DNA of 63,797 bases, filler included, from Lenisia limosa (taxonomy: Eukaryota > Protista > Breviatea): NCBI GenBank assembly GCA_001655205.1. It is 19 parts of 19 records of this genome, joined end to end, with 100 filler letters (N's around TTAATTAATTAA, not from the genome) between each part and the next. Parts side by side here need not be neighbours in the genome. Positions count along the whole stretch, not along the records: positions 7,738 to 19,708 come from LPNZ01006682.1; 18 more parts are not named here. One strand, written 5' to 3'. The notes beneath the pieces were generated by a model. The model saw only the letters and a program-made list of their open reading frames with translations. It was not told the DNA's origin and ran no database searches. Below are positions 7,278 to 19,625 of this stretch, in pieces. Every line of letters begins with the position of its first letter. Position 1 is the stretch's first letter. The position numbers were made by a program, and so were the translations under genes.

Positions 7278-8018
7278 TGAGTGGGCGGATTGTGTTCCGC
7301 AAAATCCTATTTTCCTTGGGAAACCACATAGCAAATCAGCCAACGCTTTTCCCGGTCACTGTATATGATTTTGTTTGCGGTTTACTGACCGCGATAAGTC
7401 CTGACACGATTGACTGATGATAAAGCTCAATATCCGTGTCTGGACTTATCGCGGTCAGAGATAATATATGTATATATATATAGTAGCTATATGTTATATG
7501 GCATCCATTTCCAAATGACCATGTTAACAGTTACAGGGAGAGCCTGATTACGATGTAGTTGGTAGGAAGGGTGAGTTTTAATAGCCTTCCAATACCTCTT
7601 ATCACGTTACAGTTGTTTGTAAGCATCCCATTTATTANNNNNNNNNNNNNNNNNNNNNNNNNNNNNNNNNNNNNNNNNNNNTTAATTAATTAANNNNNNN
7701 NNNNNNNNNNNNNNNNNNNNNNNNNNNNNNNNNNNNNGGGGGGGGGGTAATTAATTATCGGGACCCGGGGTTTACAACATAGAAATTTTAAAATACCACA
7801 TAATCAAGCAATTCCTACTTTGTTTTTCAATCAAGTCTGTACTACCCGTGGTAAATGTGGAAGGGTTCGGCCAAATACTCCCTTAATTATTACTCATTTC
7901 AATGTGATCATATATGCATTATACATATGATATCTATTGATATTGACTTATATAGTGTAAAATTATATTGAGAAGATAATCATCTTTAAACATTCTGCGT
8001 TACTCTTGACTTCTTCAG

Positions 8019-11000
8019 GAAGACCCCATTTCCTGGGTTATTACCGCTTCGAGCTCGTTCGCAACAGTCAACGGACTTAAGCCGGCCACAACCTACTCCG
8101 TGGTGTACAGCTTGGACCTTGTTCCTTCCCCAGATTACATTCTCAACGTCGCCTCTTCGGCTCAAAATGTGTCGACCGGAGTTCCAACTATTCCGCCCGT
8201 GGCTTCTCTCAACGTACGCGTTTTCACTTGTTTAAATCCAAAAACAATGCTCTGTATTTTATTTTTCTCTTCTTTTTTTTTTTTTCATTTTGTTTATGTG
8301 TGCAGGTATACAGAATATACATATATTCAAAACCTGGGGAAACAAATACGTATACATTGGGATACCGTATAAAAAGTACCATACCGCTTCACAGCTATTT
8401 GCATGGTTTTCTAATCCATTTGTCTAGGCCATTCAAACCAGTAACGAGACCGCCTCTGTGACTTGGGAGTACCTTCCCGCCATCAAAATTGCCGCATACA
8501 TGCCCTTGCACGTACGCATTGCCGTTACTCCTGGCGACACCGTCACAATCCCGTATGAAAATACGAACACAACCATCACCGGTCTTGTACCTGACACGCT
8601 TTACTCGATTACTGTTGTCATGTGCGCCTCTGATTCGGTCTGTGATACCACTGAAACAACGACTTCCCTCCAAACCCCGGCCAACACGGTGGATCAACCA
8701 ACCAATTTCCGCTGGATGCCTGCTAAGCGCAAGGGTCGCTTTGGTACTTACTCCGCCCAACTTCTCTGGGATGCTCCTGCTGACTGCCCTGTTGAAAAGT
8801 ACATAGTCCGTGTTCGCAGCAGCGGTGCCACCTTTGAAACCGTTGTACCTACTATGGAGCTTCATGGCATTGCCGTTCTCAGAACATACGACATTTCTGT
8901 TGCTACAGTGAACTCCTATGGAATGTCGCGATTCAGGACTAGTACGCTTGTTTTTGTTCATTATTTCCCTATTTCATTTTGGGGGAGCTTTATGAGAGTA
9001 CTTTGCAATTGATATTCCTTTCTAGTTGCCTTATTTTTTTAAAATCCTAACTTTTTCAGTTGGAGTCGGTGCTGTCATCGATGAAATGGTTATCCACTAC
9101 TTCTCAGCCCAAAGTGCCCTGACGTCACCATCTTCATATGTCAAGGCTGGCTCCAACCTCATGCTTGTTTTCTCAAAGCCAATCAGGCCTCGAGACGACC
9201 TTAATATCGATTGTCCAGTCTTGGACTGTCAACTCGATGCGGTCCTGAACGTGACGGAAATCCGTACCGCAAGAACTGCTACTGAAAGCGATGCCAGTTT
9301 CGATTTCATCCGAATGAAATTCATCAGCGACCAACCCGAATTAGGCCTGGCCTTCACTCCGGGCACCATCTGTCAGCTCAACCCTGATTGCGAGTTTATC
9401 CCCGACGACGAAGACGTTGACGTTCCAGCTCTGACGCTTTCTACTCCACCAATGGTCAATGGCTTGACCGCTCTTCAAACCGATTTCTACCTCAAGGGCA
9501 CGAAAATGGAACTCGTTTCAGGCGAATTCTACAACATTGGCCCGGATGTGGTCTTTGACCGCAGAAGCACGCCGCCGGACGTTGAATACTTTATCCGCAT
9601 CGCTTCCGACGGCAATATTGTTCTCTACGACGGCGATGGTGCCGCAGCTCAGGCCATCCAGTTCAGGGCACAATACACCGACTTTGAGCGTCTGATCGAA
9701 AACGTCAACGCGACCGCAATCAATGATTTCGAAGGAACAGCCACTGTGACCTTCACCATCTCTGAAGCCGAGCAGAATCGTCTGAGAACAACCTCAAAGA
9801 GGTCCTTCAACGTGGTTCGTCCCAACCTCCCTCCCTGGTTCGAGGACTTCGATGTGGCCCCCGTTTTTGGTCACAACGCGGCAACTACGCTCTTCACCAC
9901 CGTTACGCTTGTTGATAACAACCCGGCGGACAAGATGACTGTTACAGTCTTCGCCCCGGGTGCCGATGTCATCCTTGCCGACTCGCTGGTCACCTCTTGC
10001 GAGCTTGACGTGTCAACAATCACCAGTGGAGCTGTTCTACTTGGCTCCCCCGAGGAAATCAACTGTGCGTTAAGTGGCCTGGAAGTCATTGCGCGAACTA
10101 TTGACACTGTTACTGGAGCTCTCGACATTCTGATCAGCGTTTCTGACGGTACCAATGACATGGTATTTGCTACCGCGTCAGCCCCCGTGGAACCTGTCTG
10201 CCACACTCCTCCTCGTCTCACCTCGGCAACAACAGCAAACGACTATGACGTTGTAATCACCTTCGATATGGACGTTATCGACCCCCCTAGTCTCCTTGTT
10301 TCCAAGGTGTTCGCCCCAACTACCGCCGCCCTCTTTGCTTCCGACGCGAGACTCAAACGCGCTTCCTCGAACTCTTTCGTTGTGATTAGTTTGACAGATT
10401 CGTCCTATGTTGTCGGCTCGGCTATTTCAGTTCGTTCCGTCTTCCGTGTGTGTGCCGACGGAGCTGCTTCGCCCAGTACGACTGCGCTCCAGGCGCCTGA
10501 ACACCCCAATGACCCAGTTATCCCGATCAGCGGACCGAAAACGGTGTCTCTCTGCGCCGGCGGCGGCGATCGAATTGTTCTCGAAAACTACTTTGCAACT
10601 GGATTTGCCGGTCGCGACGCCGAAATGATGTGGTCCGTCCCGGGATACTCCGAGTTCTTAGCGGACCAAGATTCATCCGCTTCCTCCATCTACCTTCTCA
10701 AGTCCGACTTGCTTACGGTCTCCGGCGACACGCTGAGTGTGCTGTTGACTGCAACTAATGCTTTTGATGTTCAATCTGTGGAAGAGCACGTGATCAGCCT
10801 TCGTTCTGGTGGGCATGAAGGCTTGGGCTTTTGGCCTGTTTTTGCATGATATTTGATAGCTTAATATATATGAAAACAAGAATAATATCGCGTAAACGCA
10901 TTATGTCTTATAAGCGTGATAGTGTGAACGGCTTCGGCCAGATACAACCTTGTTTTATTCTCATTTATCTTGGGTGGGGGTATCCACAATAATTATCATA

Positions 11001-14000
11001 CATATTATTATATTATTTCTTTGACTTCCTTCACCTTTCAGGGGCGGCTGTGGTTCCGATCCTGACTAGCACCAAGCTCAGTCAGAGCTACAAGGCCACT
11101 ATCCATCGCCTCTCAGTCACGGCTGATCTCACTGTCTGCGACTTCTCGAGTAGTGATCTTCGATTCGAATGGACCACAGATTACATTAGGAACCCTATTC
11201 GCCAAATCACTGCGAATTCTTCTACGTTGGGGAGGGGGGTCTGAAATATCGTGATATGCTGCCTTATGCCAATTATGTAGCCTTTGTGTTTTTTTTTTTT
11301 TGTTTTTTTTTTTNNNNNNNNNNNNNNNNNNNNNNNNNNNNNNNNNNNNNNNNNNNNNNNNNNTTTATGATTGTGTGAATTATATTGCACTATAATCCAA
11401 TATCTTATAAGCGTGGACGGCTTCGGTGCGATACTACCTTGTTTTTAGTTCTCATCTCAATTTTTTTTATATTTTTGTACCTTGAAGATATTTGGACTTA
11501 CCACTTCAGGGTAACTCTGGAAATGGACAAATTGGTCGCATCTGACCTGGTCCCTCTCACGGTCACGGCTTATATTGAGGGCGTGCCTTCCTCGAGAGCC
11601 TCGTTGACGGTACGTTTTATTTTTTTGGAGCAAGACATATTATACAAAAAAAAATTGCACAAGAAATATATACATTCTTGGGAAACAAATAAATACATTG
11701 GAGACCATTAAAACAAATATTATACACTGACCGCAATAAGTCCAGGGAGATTGAGTTTCATCTAGAGTCACTCGTGTCAGAGCTTATCACGGTCATTGTA
11801 CATTAAATACCTAGGTACAAAGTCTATATATCATTGGGCCAGTCTCTCATTTCCCAGTGCAAACTCACGTTTCAGGTCACATTCGAAAAATATGACTTCC
11901 GTTTCAACCCTGAACTTGAGGGAGGAAGTGAGCGTCGAGTCACAGTCGGAGAAGAATTTGAAATAATCCCCGTATACGGCTACAGAGGCGGCCGTCTTAG
12001 TACGACAACCCGTATTATCGGGACTATTGAGGACTACAAAATGACCGTTCTTTCACCGTCCGTCTTCACTTTGGTCCACGAAGTCACGCGACATGCCTAC
12101 ATCAGCAAGGGTGTTCGTCGTTACATCACGGAGCAGTTCGTTCAGAAAATCATCGCCGAGTACAACGGCTTCGCTATTAACTGTAATGTTGTTGATAACA
12201 GTCGCTGGAGCGGCAGTACGTTCGAACAGCGTTATAACGTTGAAGTTACAACCTATCCCGAAACCGCGGCGGAGCTCAATGTTACCCGTTCATTCACGGA
12301 CGACGACTATATCGTCACTGTCTCCAAATACGGAAACTACGTGCAATTACGTCAAAACTCAACCGCCGTTCCGGGCGTAAAACTCCTCAACATCGACGCA
12401 ACCTCCGCACTCGGCTACACTGCTTCCTGCAACCCGACCTTCGAACACGCCATAGTCGAGCCTAAGGTCCTTGTAGCCAAGGCCAACATGGCCTATTCGA
12501 ACCAGGATTGGACAGCTTCGACCTTCGCAAGAATCAGAAATGCCAAGCTCCAGCTCATTTTTAGAGGCTGCAGCAACCCTGCTACCGAGTTTCAGCTTTC
12601 GATGCCTCTTAAAGATGGCCGCATTATGCGAACTTCCGGCGCTCAACGGCGTGGCGCTGGCGTACTGTTTGCGTTCCCGAGACTAAAGCAGACGTTTAGA
12701 AGTTCGATTACCATCGTCGGCAAGGTTGACGGTCTAGTAACATGTCACTCGCAAATGACTGTTCTGTACGAACGCAATTCTAGAACTGGTTACAGTACTG
12801 ATGATGAAATTGCCGCATTCCTCCAACAATCCCCAACGGAGGCTGCAATGGGACTCTCAGAACTGAAGGAATACGACTCGATTTTCGCAAGACGTCGCGC
12901 TAGCGGCCCTTCGCCTAGCACCTTAGCCGTTAACAAACTTGCTGAATTGTCTCAGACCTACCCATCTCCGGAAGTTATGTATGCAGCAATGGAAATGGCT
13001 GCCGACCTTCATGACTACTCTCTTGACGACCAAGTCAGCATCTTCACATCGGTTCTCACCTGTGTTGAAGCCGTTGTCACTTCCGAGTTCATCGGAGACC
13101 GCGATAGTTCAATTGATGCACTCGGTGACGCCTTGACCGTGGCTCACGCATTCGCTTCAAACAGCACCACCATCCCTCCTAACGGCATCGTTTCGATGCT
13201 CACAGCCATCAACGAAGCCGCGGCTGTTCTTATCCCCTCTGCCGCTCTATACGACGACGAAAGCGCAATCATCTTGGCGCTGGCCAACCACTCAATCTCG
13301 GCCGGTTTAACATCGGAAGCTATCATGATCACTTCTGACATTTCCGCCTCCGTGAACTCCACTACCGAACTCGACGTTGCTCTGATGACCACCACAATCG
13401 AAGCCGCACCGAGCCTCCTGAGCCCAATCTTTGCTCTTGGTTCGTCAGCGTTCCCGGTCGCGACGGTAACTATCAACTCGATCGTCTCGGAGGAGCTCGC
13501 CGCCGCAGTATGTGACACTTGCCTTCCGCAGTGGCATCGTCTCGACAACAATACGTGGACGCCTCTTGGCGCGCCTTTCTCTTCGGAATATAACCTGGAC
13601 GGAATGGTGGACTTCGAGCTGGAAGCCGACGTAAACGTGGCGTACGCGCTCATTGGCGTTGACGTTGTGCGCGTTCCCACGTGCAATAATGGCGTAGTTG
13701 AAGGCGACGAGGAGTGTGACCCTTATAACACCGCTATGACCGGATGTGAGAATTGCGCCATTACGCCAGGTTACGTGTGCGCCGGTAAACCGTCCGTTTG
13801 CGTCCCGGAAGGCCCTGAAACGTGCCGGGCTCCAGAACTGGTTTCAGGCTGTATTGCCTGCATGCCATCATCAGGCGCCACTTGCAGCCTTTGCGCCGTT
13901 GACGGACACGTGCCTATCGGTGACAAATGTGTCCCCGCGACCGGACTTTCCAAAACCAGCCCGGTTGTCCCGGATGCCACGAACTCCTTCCAGTTCGGCG

Positions 14001-17000
14001 GAAGCTCTGGACTTCCGACGGTTACGCTTGACTTGCCAGCTGCGGTCGCGGCTCTGGTCAGTTCAGTTCAGTTCGGCGTGGCAAACCCCGTTACACCCGA
14101 GTACCAAAACCCCGACGATCTCACCGGATTCCTTGGAATCAGCTTTGAGCTGAGCCTTCTCGACGCCAACGGCTCCGTTTTGGACCTAGGCATCCTGGTA
14201 GAACCCGCGGTTTTGACAGTGACCACCGCCGAGCTCTCCACGCCTTCCGGCTACGGCGCCATGATCGGACTTGATTCTGGCTGGAGCACAGTGGAATCCA
14301 CATGCACGGCCGCGGAGGCGACAGCTGTTTCCGGCGGCGTATTGACGTTCAGCACTTGCCACTTCACGCAATTCGCGATTATTGAGGGTGGCGCCGTTGA
14401 GGAGTTCTGCCCCCTGGTTCCAGATTATGCTCTTGGAGCTTTCTCGAACTGTAATGGAACATTTGTTCCTGTTGGAACTCGTTGCAATGTCCTCTGTAAT
14501 AACCCTCTGTACAGCGCGGTGAATGGAGTGGTCGAATGTAACTCAACTTCGTTCACTTGGCCAACATCACTTTGCAAAATCGACTCGCTTGTTATCCCAG
14601 AAGACACCTCCGACGTCTCATTACCTTGCGATGAAACGAATCCCTTATTCCCGGGTTGCCAACCATGCGAAGAGGGCAGCACGCTGTACCCTGACTGCTT
14701 GCCCTGTACCTCTAATCATACCAACTGGCCCGATTGCATGGAATGCAGCCTTGAAACTGTTGACCATCCCAACTACCCAGATTGCGTCGTCTGTGATGAA
14801 AATTCGATCTTCCATCCCAACTATCCCGACTGTGTTGCCTGCACTATTGACACGCCTACACACCCTCTTTATCCCGGCTGCGTGCCATGCAATTCGTCCC
14901 ATCCGAACTATCCGAACAACGTCGGATGTGTCGACTGCACTTCCAACAACGAGAATTATCCCGACTGTCTTCCTTGCGATCTAGATCATCCGATCCACCC
15001 AATGTACCCGGGCTGTGTGGAGTGCACAGATAATCCCACTCACCCTAATTACCCCGATTGTGAGCCTTGTTCTTCTAACAGCACCAACTACCCCTCATGC
15101 CTTCCTTGCAGCTTGAGCACCCCGGAGCACCCCAGTTACCCCGGATGTGTGGAATGCACTTTAGATACTCCGAGCCACCCTAATTACCCCGATTGCGTGC
15201 CGTGTGATCTTGACTCTCCAACACATCCCAACTATCCCGATTGTGTTGAATGCACACTGCTCACCCCCACTCACCCCAATTATCCCGACTGCGTGGAATG
15301 CTCCGTTGGTACCCCGACCCATCCCGGGTACCCCGGATGTATGGCTTGCAATCTCACCACCCCATGGCACCCCGAATACCCGGGTTGCGTGAACTGCACT
15401 TTGGATACGCCGACGCATCCGAATTATCCTGATTGTGTCACGTGTACGCTCGAAACCACTACGCACCCGAACTATCCCGATTGTGTCACGTGCACTGCAC
15501 TGACGCCAACTCACCCCGAGTACCCGGGCTGCACCCCATGCACCCTCGATAACCCGGATCATCCAGACTTCCCGGGCTGTGTTAATTGCACTTTAGACAC
15601 ACCAGAGCATCCTAACTACCCCGGATGCGTGCCGTGTGACTTAACCACTCCGAGCCACCCAAGTTATCCCGATTGTGTCCCATGCAATTTGACCACTCTT
15701 ACCCATCCCAGTTACCCCGGATGTGTAGAATGTACCCTCAGTACCCCGGATCATCCCTGGTACCCTGACTGTGTCAATTGTACTCTTGATACTCCCACAC
15801 ATCCGAACTACCCGGGCTGTGTTAAATGTACTTTAGACACGCCCACGCACCCCCACTATCCCGACTGCGTACCGTGTAATTCCACGACAATTGACCATCC
15901 CAGCTATCCCGGCTGCTGGAACTGCACATTAGACACGACATCGCATCCCTATTATCCCGGATGTGTGGAATGCGTCGGAAATAGCAACCATCCGAACTTC
16001 CCGGCCTGTGGTGATTGCCTAGAATCAGACCCCGGGTATCCCGGGTGTTTGCCTTGCGACAAGGACCACCCTGAGCATCCGAACTACTCAAATTGCGTTA
16101 CGTGCACGTTGGATACGCCACTTCACGCCAACTACCCGGATTGCGCGCCGTGCAATTTGACCACTCTTACCCATCCCAGTTACCCCGGATGTGTAGAATG
16201 TACCCTCAGTACCCCGGACCACCCCTGGTACCCCGATTGTGTCAATTGTACTCTTGATACTCCCACGCACCCCCATTATCCTGGATGTGTTAACTGCACT
16301 TTAGACACGCCTACCCATCCTGATTACCCTGGCTGTGCAGAATGCACATTAGACACCCCTACTCATCCCAATTACCCCGATTGCGTGCCGTGTGACTTAA
16401 CTACTCCGAGCCACCCCAGTTATCCCGATTGTGCCCCATGCAATTTGACGACCGTTTTGCATCCCAACTACCCGGGCTGTGTTGAATGTACCCTTGATAC
16501 TCCCACACATCCAGACTTCCCGGGATGTGTTAACTGCACTTTAGACACGCCTACTCATCCTGATTACCCTGGCTGTGTGGAATGTACGTTAGATACTCCG
16601 TTGCATCCCCACTATCCGAATTGCGTGAATTGCACATTAGACACGCCAACTCATCCTAACTACCCCGGATGTGTAGAATGCACCCTCAGTACCCCAGACC
16701 ACCCCGGGTACCCTGACTGTGTCAATTGTACTCTTGATACTCCCACACATCCGAACTACCCGGGCTGTGTTGAATGTACTTTGAACACGACGACTCACCC
16801 CAATTATCCGGGATGTGTTAACTGCACTCTAGACACGCCTACCCATCCTGATTACCCTGGGTGTGTCGAATGCACTTTAGATACTCCGCTGCATCCCAAT
16901 TACCCCGATTGTGTCGAATGTAACCTCAACACCACCACTCATCCCAACTATCCTAATTGTGCGCCTTGCAATTTAAACACTACTGCCCATCCGAACTACC

Positions 17001-18438
17001 CCGGATGTGTAGAATGCACTGCCAGTACCCCGAGCCACCCCGGATACCCTGATTGTCTCCCCTGTGACAGCAACCACCCCAACTACCCGGCCTGTGAATC
17101 CTCTGCTGATGTCAATAATGCCGAGGAAGATCCTGTGATCGCTAACGCCGATGAGAGCACGCTGGAAACTGTCGCTCCTATTGCGGGAATTGGTCTTCTT
17201 GCTGTGGCTGCTGTGGCCGTTGTTGCTCTTGTTGTTGTCGGAGGCAAATCGGAAAAGGATCAGCCGACGGAGAAGGACCACTCGGTTAGGGGAGTAATAC
17301 TGTTTGCCACACTTTTTTTTTTTTTGTTTTGTTTTTCATTGTTTTATTCCCTGTGTCAACGATGACGAAAGATCATACTGATTGAGGGGACAGTAAAAGA
17401 TGACCAAAGATTGCATGAAGCTGAAATATTACTCACCTCAGTAAAGGCCAAATTGTGTTAAATCCACTCTAAATGTATATAAAAGTTAGAGAAGGCGAAT
17501 CGAGGAGGCAGTGTATTACGTTTTGCCTCGTTTTATTACCATTCTCTCTCTTTGTTCTATGCTTTTTATGCTCTATTTTCTCATATTTTTTAGCTGGCTC
17601 CTGTTGCTCCCATTTCAGGCAGCAGCGATACTGCCGCAACTCAGGATATTGCTGAAGATGTAATCACGTGAGAGAGGTGAAACAAGGTGAATATAAGGAT
17701 ATTCAGTGACCAGGATAGGTCGTGACCGATTTTCATTGGAAAATCACTGAGCAAATCGGTCAAGACTTATCCCGGTCACTGTATATCACAAAGCAAATCG
17801 GTCAAGCCTTATCCAAGTTTATAATTACGTGGGGTTGCTGCTAAAATTCCCTAGGGCGAGTGGAGGAGTTATAATCTGCTCTAGAACTCCATTTCAGACA
17901 AAATCAATTATTATCCCAGTGTCCTATTGATTTCCGTATAACAGTCCTAGTGTTGAACCCTTCGCCACAACCGATGGTGGGGAAGTGGCTACACTGCCCT
18001 CTTCAATTGACGCTGGAATGACCGCTCCTACCGCTGGTACCCCTGATTCTGAGNNNNNNNNNNNNNNNNNNNNNNNNNNNNNNNNNNNNNNNNNNNNNNN
18101 NNNNNNNNNNNNNNNNNNNNNNNNNNNNNNNNNNNNNNNNNNNNNNNNNNNNNNNNNNNNNNNNNNNNNNNNNNNTAGACTTCACATCAAAATAAAAAAA
18201 AAATCTTGATAAAATTGCGATTCAATAACAAAACTGATCCATCAGGGCTCCCCCTACGCCTGTCACCCCGACCACTCCCGCGGATAAACCCTCAGATACT
18301 CCTGTCACACCGTCGGAAGCGGATAAGCCTTCTGAAGCTTCCGACTCGACTCCGGAACCCCTGGAAGTCCCCTCCGAGCCTGAGGTGATCCAGATTAGTG
18401 ATGATGACTCATCTCCGATCCAAGATTCGTCGGTCTAA
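8019..18438 (+). CDS. Giant single-pass cell-surface protein: FN3 x3, REJ-like region, Cys-rich repeat, GPS motif, sushi-like module, ~52 CxxC repeats, TM helix, acidic tail (5' truncated)
   Basis: Phase-consistent exons 8019-8213, 8428-8941, 9060-10808, 11042-11225, 11510-11609, 11876-17284, 17594-17667, 17951-(gap) and ~18246-18438 (TAA). FN3-like motifs (VNGLKPATTYSV; ITGLVPDTLYSITV; LLWDAP...YIVRV...TYDISVATVNSYG). REJ-like PVIPISGPKTVSLC...ATGFAGR...WSV. Myxococcus/DUF4215-like CNNGVVEGDEECD...GCENCAITPGYVC. GPS-like WSTVESTC...TCHFTQFAII. Hydrophobic helix IAGIGLLAVAAVAVVALVVVGG. Domain names come from motif recognition only. Confidence 0.88.
11725..11798. mobile_element. MITE family B2 (TA|CACTGACCGC...GGTCATTG|TA)
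   Basis: Inverted termini with TA flanks. A related copy at ~7384-7460 and a partial at ~33519. TA target duplication is typical of Tc1/mariner-type elements. Confidence 0.75.
14624..17097 (+). repeat. Coding tandem repeat, 48-nt/16-aa unit, consensus CTLDTPTHPNYP[GD]CVE, ~52 CxxC pairs
   Basis: Counted directly from the translation of ORF 11834-17365. Shorter units of 12-14 aa occur at the start and end and around 15960-16060. Confidence 0.95.
17704..17781. mobile_element. MITE family B1 copy
   Basis: CAGTGACCAGGATAGGTCGTGACCGATTT ... AAATCGGTCAAGACTTATCCCGGTCACTG|TA. Confidence 0.85.
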
Positions 18439-19193: not shown

Positions 19194-19625
19194 CCATATC
19201 CGTCCGAGGCGGAAAAACTTGGGACATTGTCAGGACTTCTGCTGACGTCTTTGCTGTAGCATACTGTCTCCACTATGTAGTGAAATGGAAGGACTTTGCT
19301 TTTTAGTCAATAGTGTCAGGACTTATCTCGGTCACTGTATATATTGTGTAGCTAGTTATCATAGTATCGTTTAATCTGTGTACCATATTTGCAAACCAAA
19401 TATAATAAATAATAATATTTTGCAAATCACACAAAATAAATACTATACAATACATGTATATTATACAACACAATACCAACATCATGTTTCATTCAACACA
19501 TAATCCCTCACCGCCTGCCTACAATAGCGGCCTCCCCCCCTACAATAGCGGCCTTACTCCCGACTGCGAGGTTTGGACTGCCAATAGCCAAAGTGTTCAG
19601 AACGTCACATCCGAAACAGAGGAGC
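19194..19625 (-). CDS. Two small exons of an unidentified gene
   Basis: CCTCCAG|LLCFGCDVLNTLAIGSPNLAVG|GTAAGG and ...KVLPFHYIVETVCYSKDVSRSPDNVPSFSASDGY|GTAAGT. Only splice signals and open frames support this. Confidence 0.35.

Follow-up and report, generated by a model that had tools for sequence, protein, structure and literature searches.

A single-pass surface glycoprotein family of the breviate Lenisia limosa with a triad-less GAIN domain and a second, putatively autoproteolytic beta-sandwich

The gene considered here occupies positions 8019–18438 on the + strand of a 63,797-nt stretch of DNA from the breviate Lenisia limosa (GCA_001655205.1), hereafter the window, and lies on the contig C6682 (LPNZ01006682.1). 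We consider it probable, at roughly 0.6, that the locus encodes a type I single-pass surface glycoprotein of a paralogous family that is related to the REJ/GAIN lineage (polycystin-1 and the sea urchin REJ proteins) and for which autoproteolysis in cis is proposed. The family keeps a GAIN fold, the catalytic-looking site has apparently been handed to a second beta-sandwich, there is one transmembrane (TM) helix, and in two members the site stands ~940 residues from the membrane. The parts of the protein that carry this reading are as follows, in window coordinates.

12743–13225, + strand: helical bundle resembling GAIN subdomain A (helices at residues 15–175 of the window model, homologous to paralog helices 4–157)
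13226–13660, + strand: equivalent of GAIN subdomain B with a degenerate GPS (C-x2-C-x-P-Q-W..W at 13511; no H-L-T)
13676–13900, + strand: Cys-rich module, probably of DUF4215 type, between the GAIN domain and the second sandwich
13931–14386, + strand: second, stand-alone GAIN-B/ZU5-like beta-sandwich of autoproteolysis type (predicted fold)
14357–14383, + strand: GPS-like motif C-H-F/T-Q-F-A-I-I, with the putative scissile bond between F (14363–14365) and T (14366–14368)
14399–14575, + strand: one CCP/sushi-like module with six Cys, recognised by a profile of this module and six modules of the paralog C9984
14657–17101, + strand: stalk of 52 tandem CxxC units (consensus C-V-x-C-T-L-D-T-P-T-H-P-N-Y-P-G/D; N-x-T sequons in many)
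17177–17251, + strand: single TM helix (Kyte-Doolittle 19-residue windows up to 2.9), followed by K-S-E-K-D-Q-P-T as in the paralogs

The GPS-like motif lies in the second sandwich. A model of the region 12701–14398, built on a 13-sequence alignment, reached a predicted local distance difference test score (pLDDT) of 57 overall and about 80 at residues 440–566, and in it the second sandwich takes up the ZU5 beta-sandwich fold. Matches to GAIN and ZU5 recur both in a re-aligned Foldseek list and in a Foldseek-independent search of 48,161 chains, and in this wide search the listed matches whose model range starts at residues 401–416 are all GAIN, ZU5 or three axonemal doublet-microtubule chains. 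The ESM Atlas gave a weak ZU5 lead only. Against the four chains whose structures stop at the cleaved P1 residue (CL1 ..837, GPR56 ..382, Gpr126 ..827, and GPR97 ..249), the aligned model range stops at residue 555, the Phe of C553-H554-F555/T556, which thereby falls exactly on the P1 position of GAIN. The downstream sandwich carries the triad as H554-F555-T556, where the model turns from its penultimate strand into its final one, and the paralog model has a lone non-strand Ser557 between strands 548–556 and 558–566. Cleavage in CL1 occurs at L837/T838, with H836 as the general base, where the chain bends sharply between its two final strands and is held by neighbouring disulfides (PMC3321182). 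Across eight paralogs of 20–50% identity, few columns of this domain are kept in seven or more; they include the C-H pair (seven), the partner Cys (all eight) and the P3' Phe, and seven of the eight have Ser or Thr at P1'. As modelled, the motif is real, conserved and placed at the scissile position of a GAIN-B/ZU5-type fold, and it belongs to an additional domain downstream of GAIN.

By homology to the confidently predicted paralog model, the GAIN domain itself lies upstream and follows the usual layout of a helical subdomain A and then a beta-sandwich subdomain B, with paralog helices 4–157 aligning with subdomain A of G protein-coupled receptors of the adhesion class (aGPCRs). The paralog residue aligned with the P1 position (~303, which aligns with L837 of CL1) is found within W-T-C-A-M-T-S-S-E-P-V-R-V, and the window segment aligned to GAIN's own GPS position has no triad. 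Because the P1-equivalent residue sits in T-S-S-E-P, the upstream GAIN appears to have kept the Cys/Trp flavour of a GPS and no His-Leu-Thr, and it is predicted to be a complete but catalytically degenerate domain. Neither the window nor any member of the family has a Pfam GPS (PF01825) match with E ≤ 1, and in the genome only the unrelated loci C1690 and C9740 pass. BLASTP between GAIN-B and the second sandwich of one paralog found no similarity, which decides neither for nor against an internal duplication.

The Cys-rich module between the two sandwiches scores 19.4 bits with DUF4215 (PF13948) in the window, below the cut-off of 27. Positions 325–370 of the family profile retrieve hundreds of DUF4215 repeat proteins, with E-values down to 7e-75 and verified by Pfam, and in the PDB the profile matches a Cys-rich C-G-N-G..D-E-G-E-E-C-D stretch of ADAM17 and pappalysin-2. 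An earlier note, made from the sequence alone, had described a Cys-rich module, which is probably of the DUF4215 type, and had read TCHF/TQFAII as a GPS-like motif, a reading borne out by its register at F555 and its conservation in the paralogs. The GAIN-B fold that the note proposed to seek near nt ~13950–14390 by structure prediction corresponds to the predicted GAIN-B/ZU5-like sandwich at 13931–14386. Its identification of the site with the GAIN/GPS site of aGPCRs and PKD1 stands with respect to the fold type and the scissile register and fails with respect to the domain, as the motif is not in GAIN proper.

Motif and TM helix both lie within exon 6, in one unbroken, gap-free frame of 1,852 codons (11807–17362; 5.5 kb), and are separated by 940 aa, close to the ~900 aa first estimated. 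The module behind the motif had been called sushi-like, and the PDB matches of its profile are indeed essentially only CCP proteins (Crry, 2e-7; DAF, 4.5e-6; CR1, factor H, C4BP, and F13B). The CCP-like modules carry six Cys, not four; Pfam Sushi gave no match, and a PDB search with the raw sequence remained blank until the module profile was used. A regular-expression count of the CxxC units arrives at exactly the number that the earlier note had given as approximate, with a spacing of 16 aa in 44 of the 51 intervals. Tandem Repeats Finder reports periods of 48, 96, 144, and 240 nt with 65–74% matches, and since the DNA copies are only this alike, the array is taken to be real and diverged. 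No further copy of the repeats was found in the genome, nor any match in Pfam or the ESM Atlas. The hydrophobic stretch after 17285 is a translated poly-T intron and not a second TM helix; the paralogs likewise show a D-Q-P-T..D-H sequence followed by an intron-like run. None of the PLAT/LH2 domain, the 11 TM helices and the channel-like C-terminus of polycystin-1 proper was found, as there is one TM helix in exon 6 and the tail exons, ~40 codons in gap 2 apart, are hydrophilic without a Pfam match. The composition of the last exon resembles the tail of the transcript-derived paralog P0036, and no exon similar to the tail exon was found elsewhere in the genome.

Six-frame searches of the genome identified at least eight paralogous loci, and Pfam REJ is above its cut-off at no fewer than 11 (including C3687, 1.3e-30; C10849, 5.5e-29; C8721, 2.7e-22; and C9984, 1.1e-14). 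Window positions 12701–14398 match residues 1397–1932 of C8721 at 1.6e-21 and C9984 at 3e-39, and the exon order of the window gene is colinear with the intronless 2,028-aa open reading frame (ORF) of C8721. Five paralogs (C8721, C3687, C8677, C10849, and C5678) carry the motif as V-C-H-L-S-T-F-A-V or V-C-H-F-T-Q-F, followed after ~35 acidic residues by one TM helix. The closest paralog, C9984 (P0003), has the motif, then ~15 CCP-like modules (~940 aa), and then one TM helix. The window gene thus shares its layout with C9984 on a different stalk, which speaks against an artefact and for the insertion of a stalk into an ancestral juxtamembrane arrangement. Among the best 150 matches of the family profile in a representative search (E < 2e-22, mostly bacterial DUF4215 repeats), those along the profile are only ORFs that seem to belong to this genome and one Lenisia transcript, and a word-based protein search with residues 815–1040 of the paralog P0002 returned only its own protein. 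The paralogous family has so far been found only in this breviate genome; more distant members may sit below the best 150.

One paralog is known to be expressed. P0036 (532 aa, from the EukProt transcriptome of Lenisia limosa) matches the contig C11722 exon by exon at 92–98% identity, which identifies the genome as that of Lenisia limosa (Breviatea, within Obazoa) or of a very close relative. The protein combines a single TM helix with an acidic tail of 110 aa, and its motif is degenerate. The gene at C11722 (L037, L038) consists of many short exons, and its motif is A-C-T-T-G-Q-F-D-L-M; judged by this sequence, the protein presumably cannot use His/Ser chemistry. Elsewhere in the genome, C10474 (L023, L026–L031) has a 1,606-aa frame in which a REJ match and a C-x2-C-x-P-x-C segment are followed by several DUF4215-type modules in tandem, and looks like a further family branch with a multiplied Cys-rich module.

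The ectodomain runs from FN3 domains through an unassigned ~580-aa region, a REJ-equivalent region, the triad-less GAIN and the DUF4215-type module to the second sandwich ending in C-H-F/T-Q-F-A-I-I. Between this sandwich and the membrane, ~940 aa have been inserted, made up of a CCP-like module and the 52 CxxC repeats, which could form disulfides and be N-glycosylated. In the most likely mechanism, the second sandwich would cut itself in the endoplasmic reticulum between Phe and Thr, with His as the general base and Thr as the nucleophile, as in GAIN and ZU5/FIIND, and the new N-terminal strand T-Q-F-A-I-I would stay clamped in the sandwich. The protein may then be displayed as a non-covalent heterodimer, with an adhesive FN3/REJ/GAIN head on a long rigid stalk. 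Mechanical load on the head could draw this strand from the sandwich and so release the head, which would make a force-limited adhesion or mechanosensing joint, closer to the SEA domains of single-pass mucins than to tethered-agonist signalling to a seven-transmembrane (7TM) region in cis. A further proposal, that the autoproteolytic function moved from GAIN's own GPS to the downstream free-standing GAIN-B/ZU5-like domain, which in two members has been raised on a Cys-rich stalk to ~940 aa above the membrane, is put forward tentatively, as less likely than not.

Several points weigh against the autoproteolytic reading. Possession of the triad does not ensure cleavage, as many aGPCRs that have it stay uncleaved. 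The expression of P0036 without H, L and S implies that cleavage is not obligatory for the family. In the window gene, the spacing from Cys to His is one residue shorter than in a canonical GPS, a single disulfide is possible in the motif domain versus two in the canonical GPS, the window's own model is poor overall, and GAIN-B was assigned by homology to the paralog. No Pfam GPS, GAIN, REJ or ZU5 was found in the window gene even at lenient E-values, with Pfam REJ (PF02010) absent exon by exon. The 5' end of the gene and the gap-2 part of its tail are not covered by this contig, and word-based protein searches with residues 1–900 of exon 6 and with exon 3 returned only the window's own protein and no transcript.

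Some of these points favour a possible, though not the likelier, explanation in which the architecture is the same and H-F-T is a structural remnant, so that the protein would be an uncleaved giant adhesin in which Cys-His..Phe merely stabilise the last beta-hairpin. The expressed paralog without a triad, the lack of a Pfam GPS match, the non-canonical Cys spacing and the single possible disulfide are all consistent with this, and the triad already lost from the upstream GAIN implies that such a loss is tolerated in the lineage. A remnant, however, would not readily account for a solvent-exposed His beside a hydroxyl residue being kept in seven of eight paralogs that are otherwise only 20–50% identical, nor for a motif exactly at the GAIN scissile position, where mutation of H, L or T in CL1 blocks cleavage (PMC3321182).

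The earlier note favoured another explanation, to which we give little credence, namely that the gene represents an entirely new class of receptor, in which a canonical GAIN/GPS of the aGPCR and PKD1 kind has come to lie 900 aa away from the membrane. In favour of this, the GPS-like motif is real, as are the GAIN-B-like fold and the distance of 940 aa, and every GAIN domain analysed by Arac et al. immediately precedes the first TM helix (PMC3321182), a position that the motif takes neither in the window gene (940 aa) nor in C9984 (~975 aa). Nevertheless, the motif is in an extra domain, with GAIN-B and the Cys-rich module between it and subdomain A, and the paralog model speaks against subdomain A packing on the motif-bearing sandwich. 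The motif is TM-adjacent in the five paralogs listed above, and the REJ domains found in these and other paralogs connect the family with the PKD1/REJ lineage. The statement that the GPS precedes a multi-pass region was incomplete in itself, as REJ and GPS with one TM helix are known in the single-pass proteins SpREJ1, SpREJ8, and SpREJ9 (PMC1934368) and two canonical-GPS genes of the same genome are apparently single-pass too. Since such proteins are known, also in this genome, and the motif is ~35 aa from the TM helix in paralogs, the window gene is better described as a divergent REJ/PKD1-like branch than as the undescribed class that had been suggested, and the single-pass layout is not new.

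These two canonical-GPS genes, at C9740 (L051, 6000–15999) and C1690 (L052, 9000–16903), are the only ones to pass Pfam GPS, with 26 and 30 bits, and read C-x-W-S-H-L-T. Each has a long frame with a helix-rich, GAIN-A-like stretch (by eye) upstream of the GPS, and both look single-pass; only the frame at C9740 shows, by eye, a REJ/PKD-like repeat pattern. The gene at C9740 begins with a stretch resembling a signal peptide and has one TM exon before the next gene, and C1690 ends in an acidic tail exon with I-Y-Q-A-S-D-D-D, which resembles V-I-Q-I-S-D-D-D of the last exon of the window gene. Polycystin-2-like channels are present in the genome, with PKD_channel (PF08016) at five or more loci (C891, C8349, C9878, C4005, and others), and 7tm_2 (PF00002) was not found exon-wise in this fragmented, intron-containing genome.

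An artefact, either a mis-assembled tandem repeat stalk or a chimeric contig of two genes, is very improbable: the draft is fragmented (11,727 contigs), the locus has two gaps and the contig starts with poly-G, but motif, stalk and TM helix share one gap-free 5.5-kb open frame, the repeat copies are diverged (65–74% DNA matches) unlike those of a collapsed or duplicated assembly, the independent paralog C9984 has the same layout on a different stalk, and the exons follow the order of the intronless C8721 ORF.

The gene model underlying this analysis has nine exons on the + strand, with compatible phases at all junctions outside gap 2, and ~2,830 codons in total, its GT..AG junctions having been read by eye, and agrees with the phase-consistent gene of at least ~2,800 aa first proposed. 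Every search was run per exon, without joining the exons into a spliced protein. The exon-like stretches have 50–59% GC, and the T-rich spacers between them 30–44%. The exons and gaps are listed below.

8019–8213, + strand: exon 1, C-terminal half of an FN3-like domain, FN3 by sequence pattern only (acceptor ..ttcag at 8018, donor GTACGC at 8214)
8428–8941, + strand: exon 2, two FN3 domains (Pfam fn3; fitting junction phases)
9060–10808, + strand: exon 3, 583-aa ectodomain region without a known family, its last ~200 aa colinear with paralogs
11042–11225, + strand: exon 4, start of the REJ-equivalent region with the motif L-R-F-E-W-T-T (weak matches only)
11314–11363, no strand: gap 1, within the T-rich intron 4 (11226–11509)
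11510–11609, + strand: exon 5, REJ-equivalent region (acceptor cag at 11509, donor GTACGT at 11610; 1 nt and 33 codons)
11876–17284, + strand: exon 6, a single open 5.4-kb exon
11876–12742, + strand: first part of exon 6, REJ-equivalent region, not recognised as REJ (its position equals that of REJ in C8721, aa ~927–1405)
17619–17659, + strand: putative exon 7, tail, the least certain (splice sites and phase only)
17945–18053, + strand: putative exon 8, hydrophilic tail (acceptor at 17944, exon-like GC, open frame into gap 2)
18054–18175, no strand: gap 2, hiding the 3' end of exon 8 and its donor site (~40 codons unseen)
18246–18435, + strand: putative exon 9, P/T/S/D/E-rich cytoplasmic tail (acceptor at 18245; stop codon TAA at 18436–18438)

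The contig is one of the 11,727 in a 49-Mb assembly, and because it starts at 7738, the 5' end of the gene and the signal peptide are missing. It opens with ten consecutive G (7738–7747), which are probably an end artefact of sequencing or assembly and not genomic. Exon 4 leaves 2 nt and exon 5 supplies 1 nt, so that the phases are compatible across gap 1, and exons 4 and 5 with the first part of exon 6 amount to 369 aa versus ~380 aa in the intronless paralog C8721; on account of both, the loss of an exon within gap 1 is unlikely. Gap 2 lies downstream of the TM helix, in the cytoplasmic tail, and neither gap falls between the motif and the TM helix.

In the head of the protein, Pfam searches of all large frames and sub-pieces with E-values up to 10 found only fn3 and a weak DUF4215, with no match to Sushi or VSP. 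Of the three FN3 domains originally counted, the two in exon 2 are confirmed by Pfam fn3 (PF00041; two stretches, E = 1.1e-11, 45.2 bits versus a cut-off of 25), and the third is the half-domain of exon 1, which has no Pfam match. Exon 3 likewise has no Pfam match, and a word-based search with it gave only the window's own protein; its residues 385–580 match C8721 782–973 (BLASTP, 4e-11) and are also matched in C5267, C10849, C3687, and C9984. The REJ-like region of the first description finds no Pfam or profile support in the window gene: hhalign and a hidden Markov model (HMM) of six paralogs were negative on the window exons, except for the short L-R-F-E-W-T-T stretch in exon 4 (hhalign, 12 columns, E = 0.016; paralog REJ HMM, 6 bits; BLAST to C8721 998–1030, E = 0.03). 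What speaks for this region is its position, which is equivalent to that of the paralog REJ domains.

The introns of the gene contain repeats. The putative intron between exons 7 and 8 holds a 35-nt inverted repeat, 89% complementary (window 17698–17787 and 19315–19342). Its arm, GTCARGACTTATCYCGGTCACTGTATAT, occurs 1,037 times in forward and 1,026 times in reverse orientation in the genome at ≤3 mismatches, compared with 0 for a reversed-pattern control, and is a very high-copy palindromic element resembling miniature inverted-repeat transposable elements. A similar element of ~45 nt, TCTTATAAGCGTG..ACGGCTTCGG..GATAC.ACCTTGTTTT, was seen by eye at ~10905–10955 (intron 3) and at ~11405–11450 (intron 4, just after gap 1), and may represent a second intronic repeat family.

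Self-cleavage of this single-pass glycoprotein would have consequences beyond this gene. Under the tentative proposal of a relocated autoproteolytic function, and if the protein cleaves, it would be the first GAIN-type self-cleaving joint away from the membrane without a multi-pass partner in cis, a mechanical “breakaway” adhesin. It could also be a natural intermediate between extracellular GAIN and stand-alone ZU5-type domains, in a lineage (Breviatea, Obazoa) near the root of animals and fungi. Confirmed cleavage would mean that GAIN-type autoproteolysis can provide a mechanical joint in its own right, with no need of tethered-agonist signalling, and would offer a tractable natural system for the role of the ancestral GAIN/ZU5 autoproteolytic fold before aGPCRs and polycystins. 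Without cleavage, the protein would be a large lineage-specific adhesin of known modules.

The closest known counterparts are the sea urchin proteins SpREJ1, SpREJ8, and SpREJ9. These large type I glycoproteins combine adhesive modules with REJ and with a GPS that lies upstream of their single TM helix, and they have no channel domain (PMC1934368). The Lenisia paralogs resemble them in having Pfam REJ, then GAIN, and then one TM helix. Unlike in the sea urchin proteins, the GPS of the Lenisia GAIN has no triad, a second GAIN-B/ZU5-like domain carries H-[L/F]-[S/T], and a DUF4215 module stands between the two; in the window gene, moreover, REJ is not detectable and a 940-aa stalk of CCP and CxxC modules separates the motif from the TM helix. 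According to Seufert et al. (PMC11697300), GAIN is known only in aGPCRs and PKD1-like proteins. In contrast to the GAIN of aGPCRs (CL1/latrophilin, BAI3, CELSR1, CD97, and GPR56), the window gene has no 7TM region in cis and no Pfam GPS/GAIN match, and its motif is in a separate sandwich without its own helical subdomain, has one possible disulfide instead of two and a C-H spacing shorter by one, and is not membrane-adjacent.

Liao et al. (2014), as cited by Seufert et al. (PMC11697300), proposed that GAIN, ZU5 and Nup98 share an ancient autoproteolytic domain. The ZU5/FIIND domains (ankyrin ZU5, PIDD, UNC5CL, NLRP1, and CARD8) lie in the cytoplasm, have no disulfides and stand in front of UPA or death domains, whereas the sandwich in the window is extracellular, has a conserved Cys pair and no Pfam ZU5 match, and is followed by CCP and CxxC modules. 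The SEA domains of single-pass mucins (MUC1 and others) are extracellular domains, juxtamembrane or associated with a stalk, whose autoproteolysis yields a non-covalent heterodimer that can be separated by force. Their fold and cleavage chemistry context (G/SVVV) are unrelated, and the likeness is a functional analogy without homology. Against these systems, what is new in the Lenisia family is a triad-less GAIN in tandem with a triad-carrying second sandwich, the 940-aa stalks in two members, and the occurrence in a breviate.

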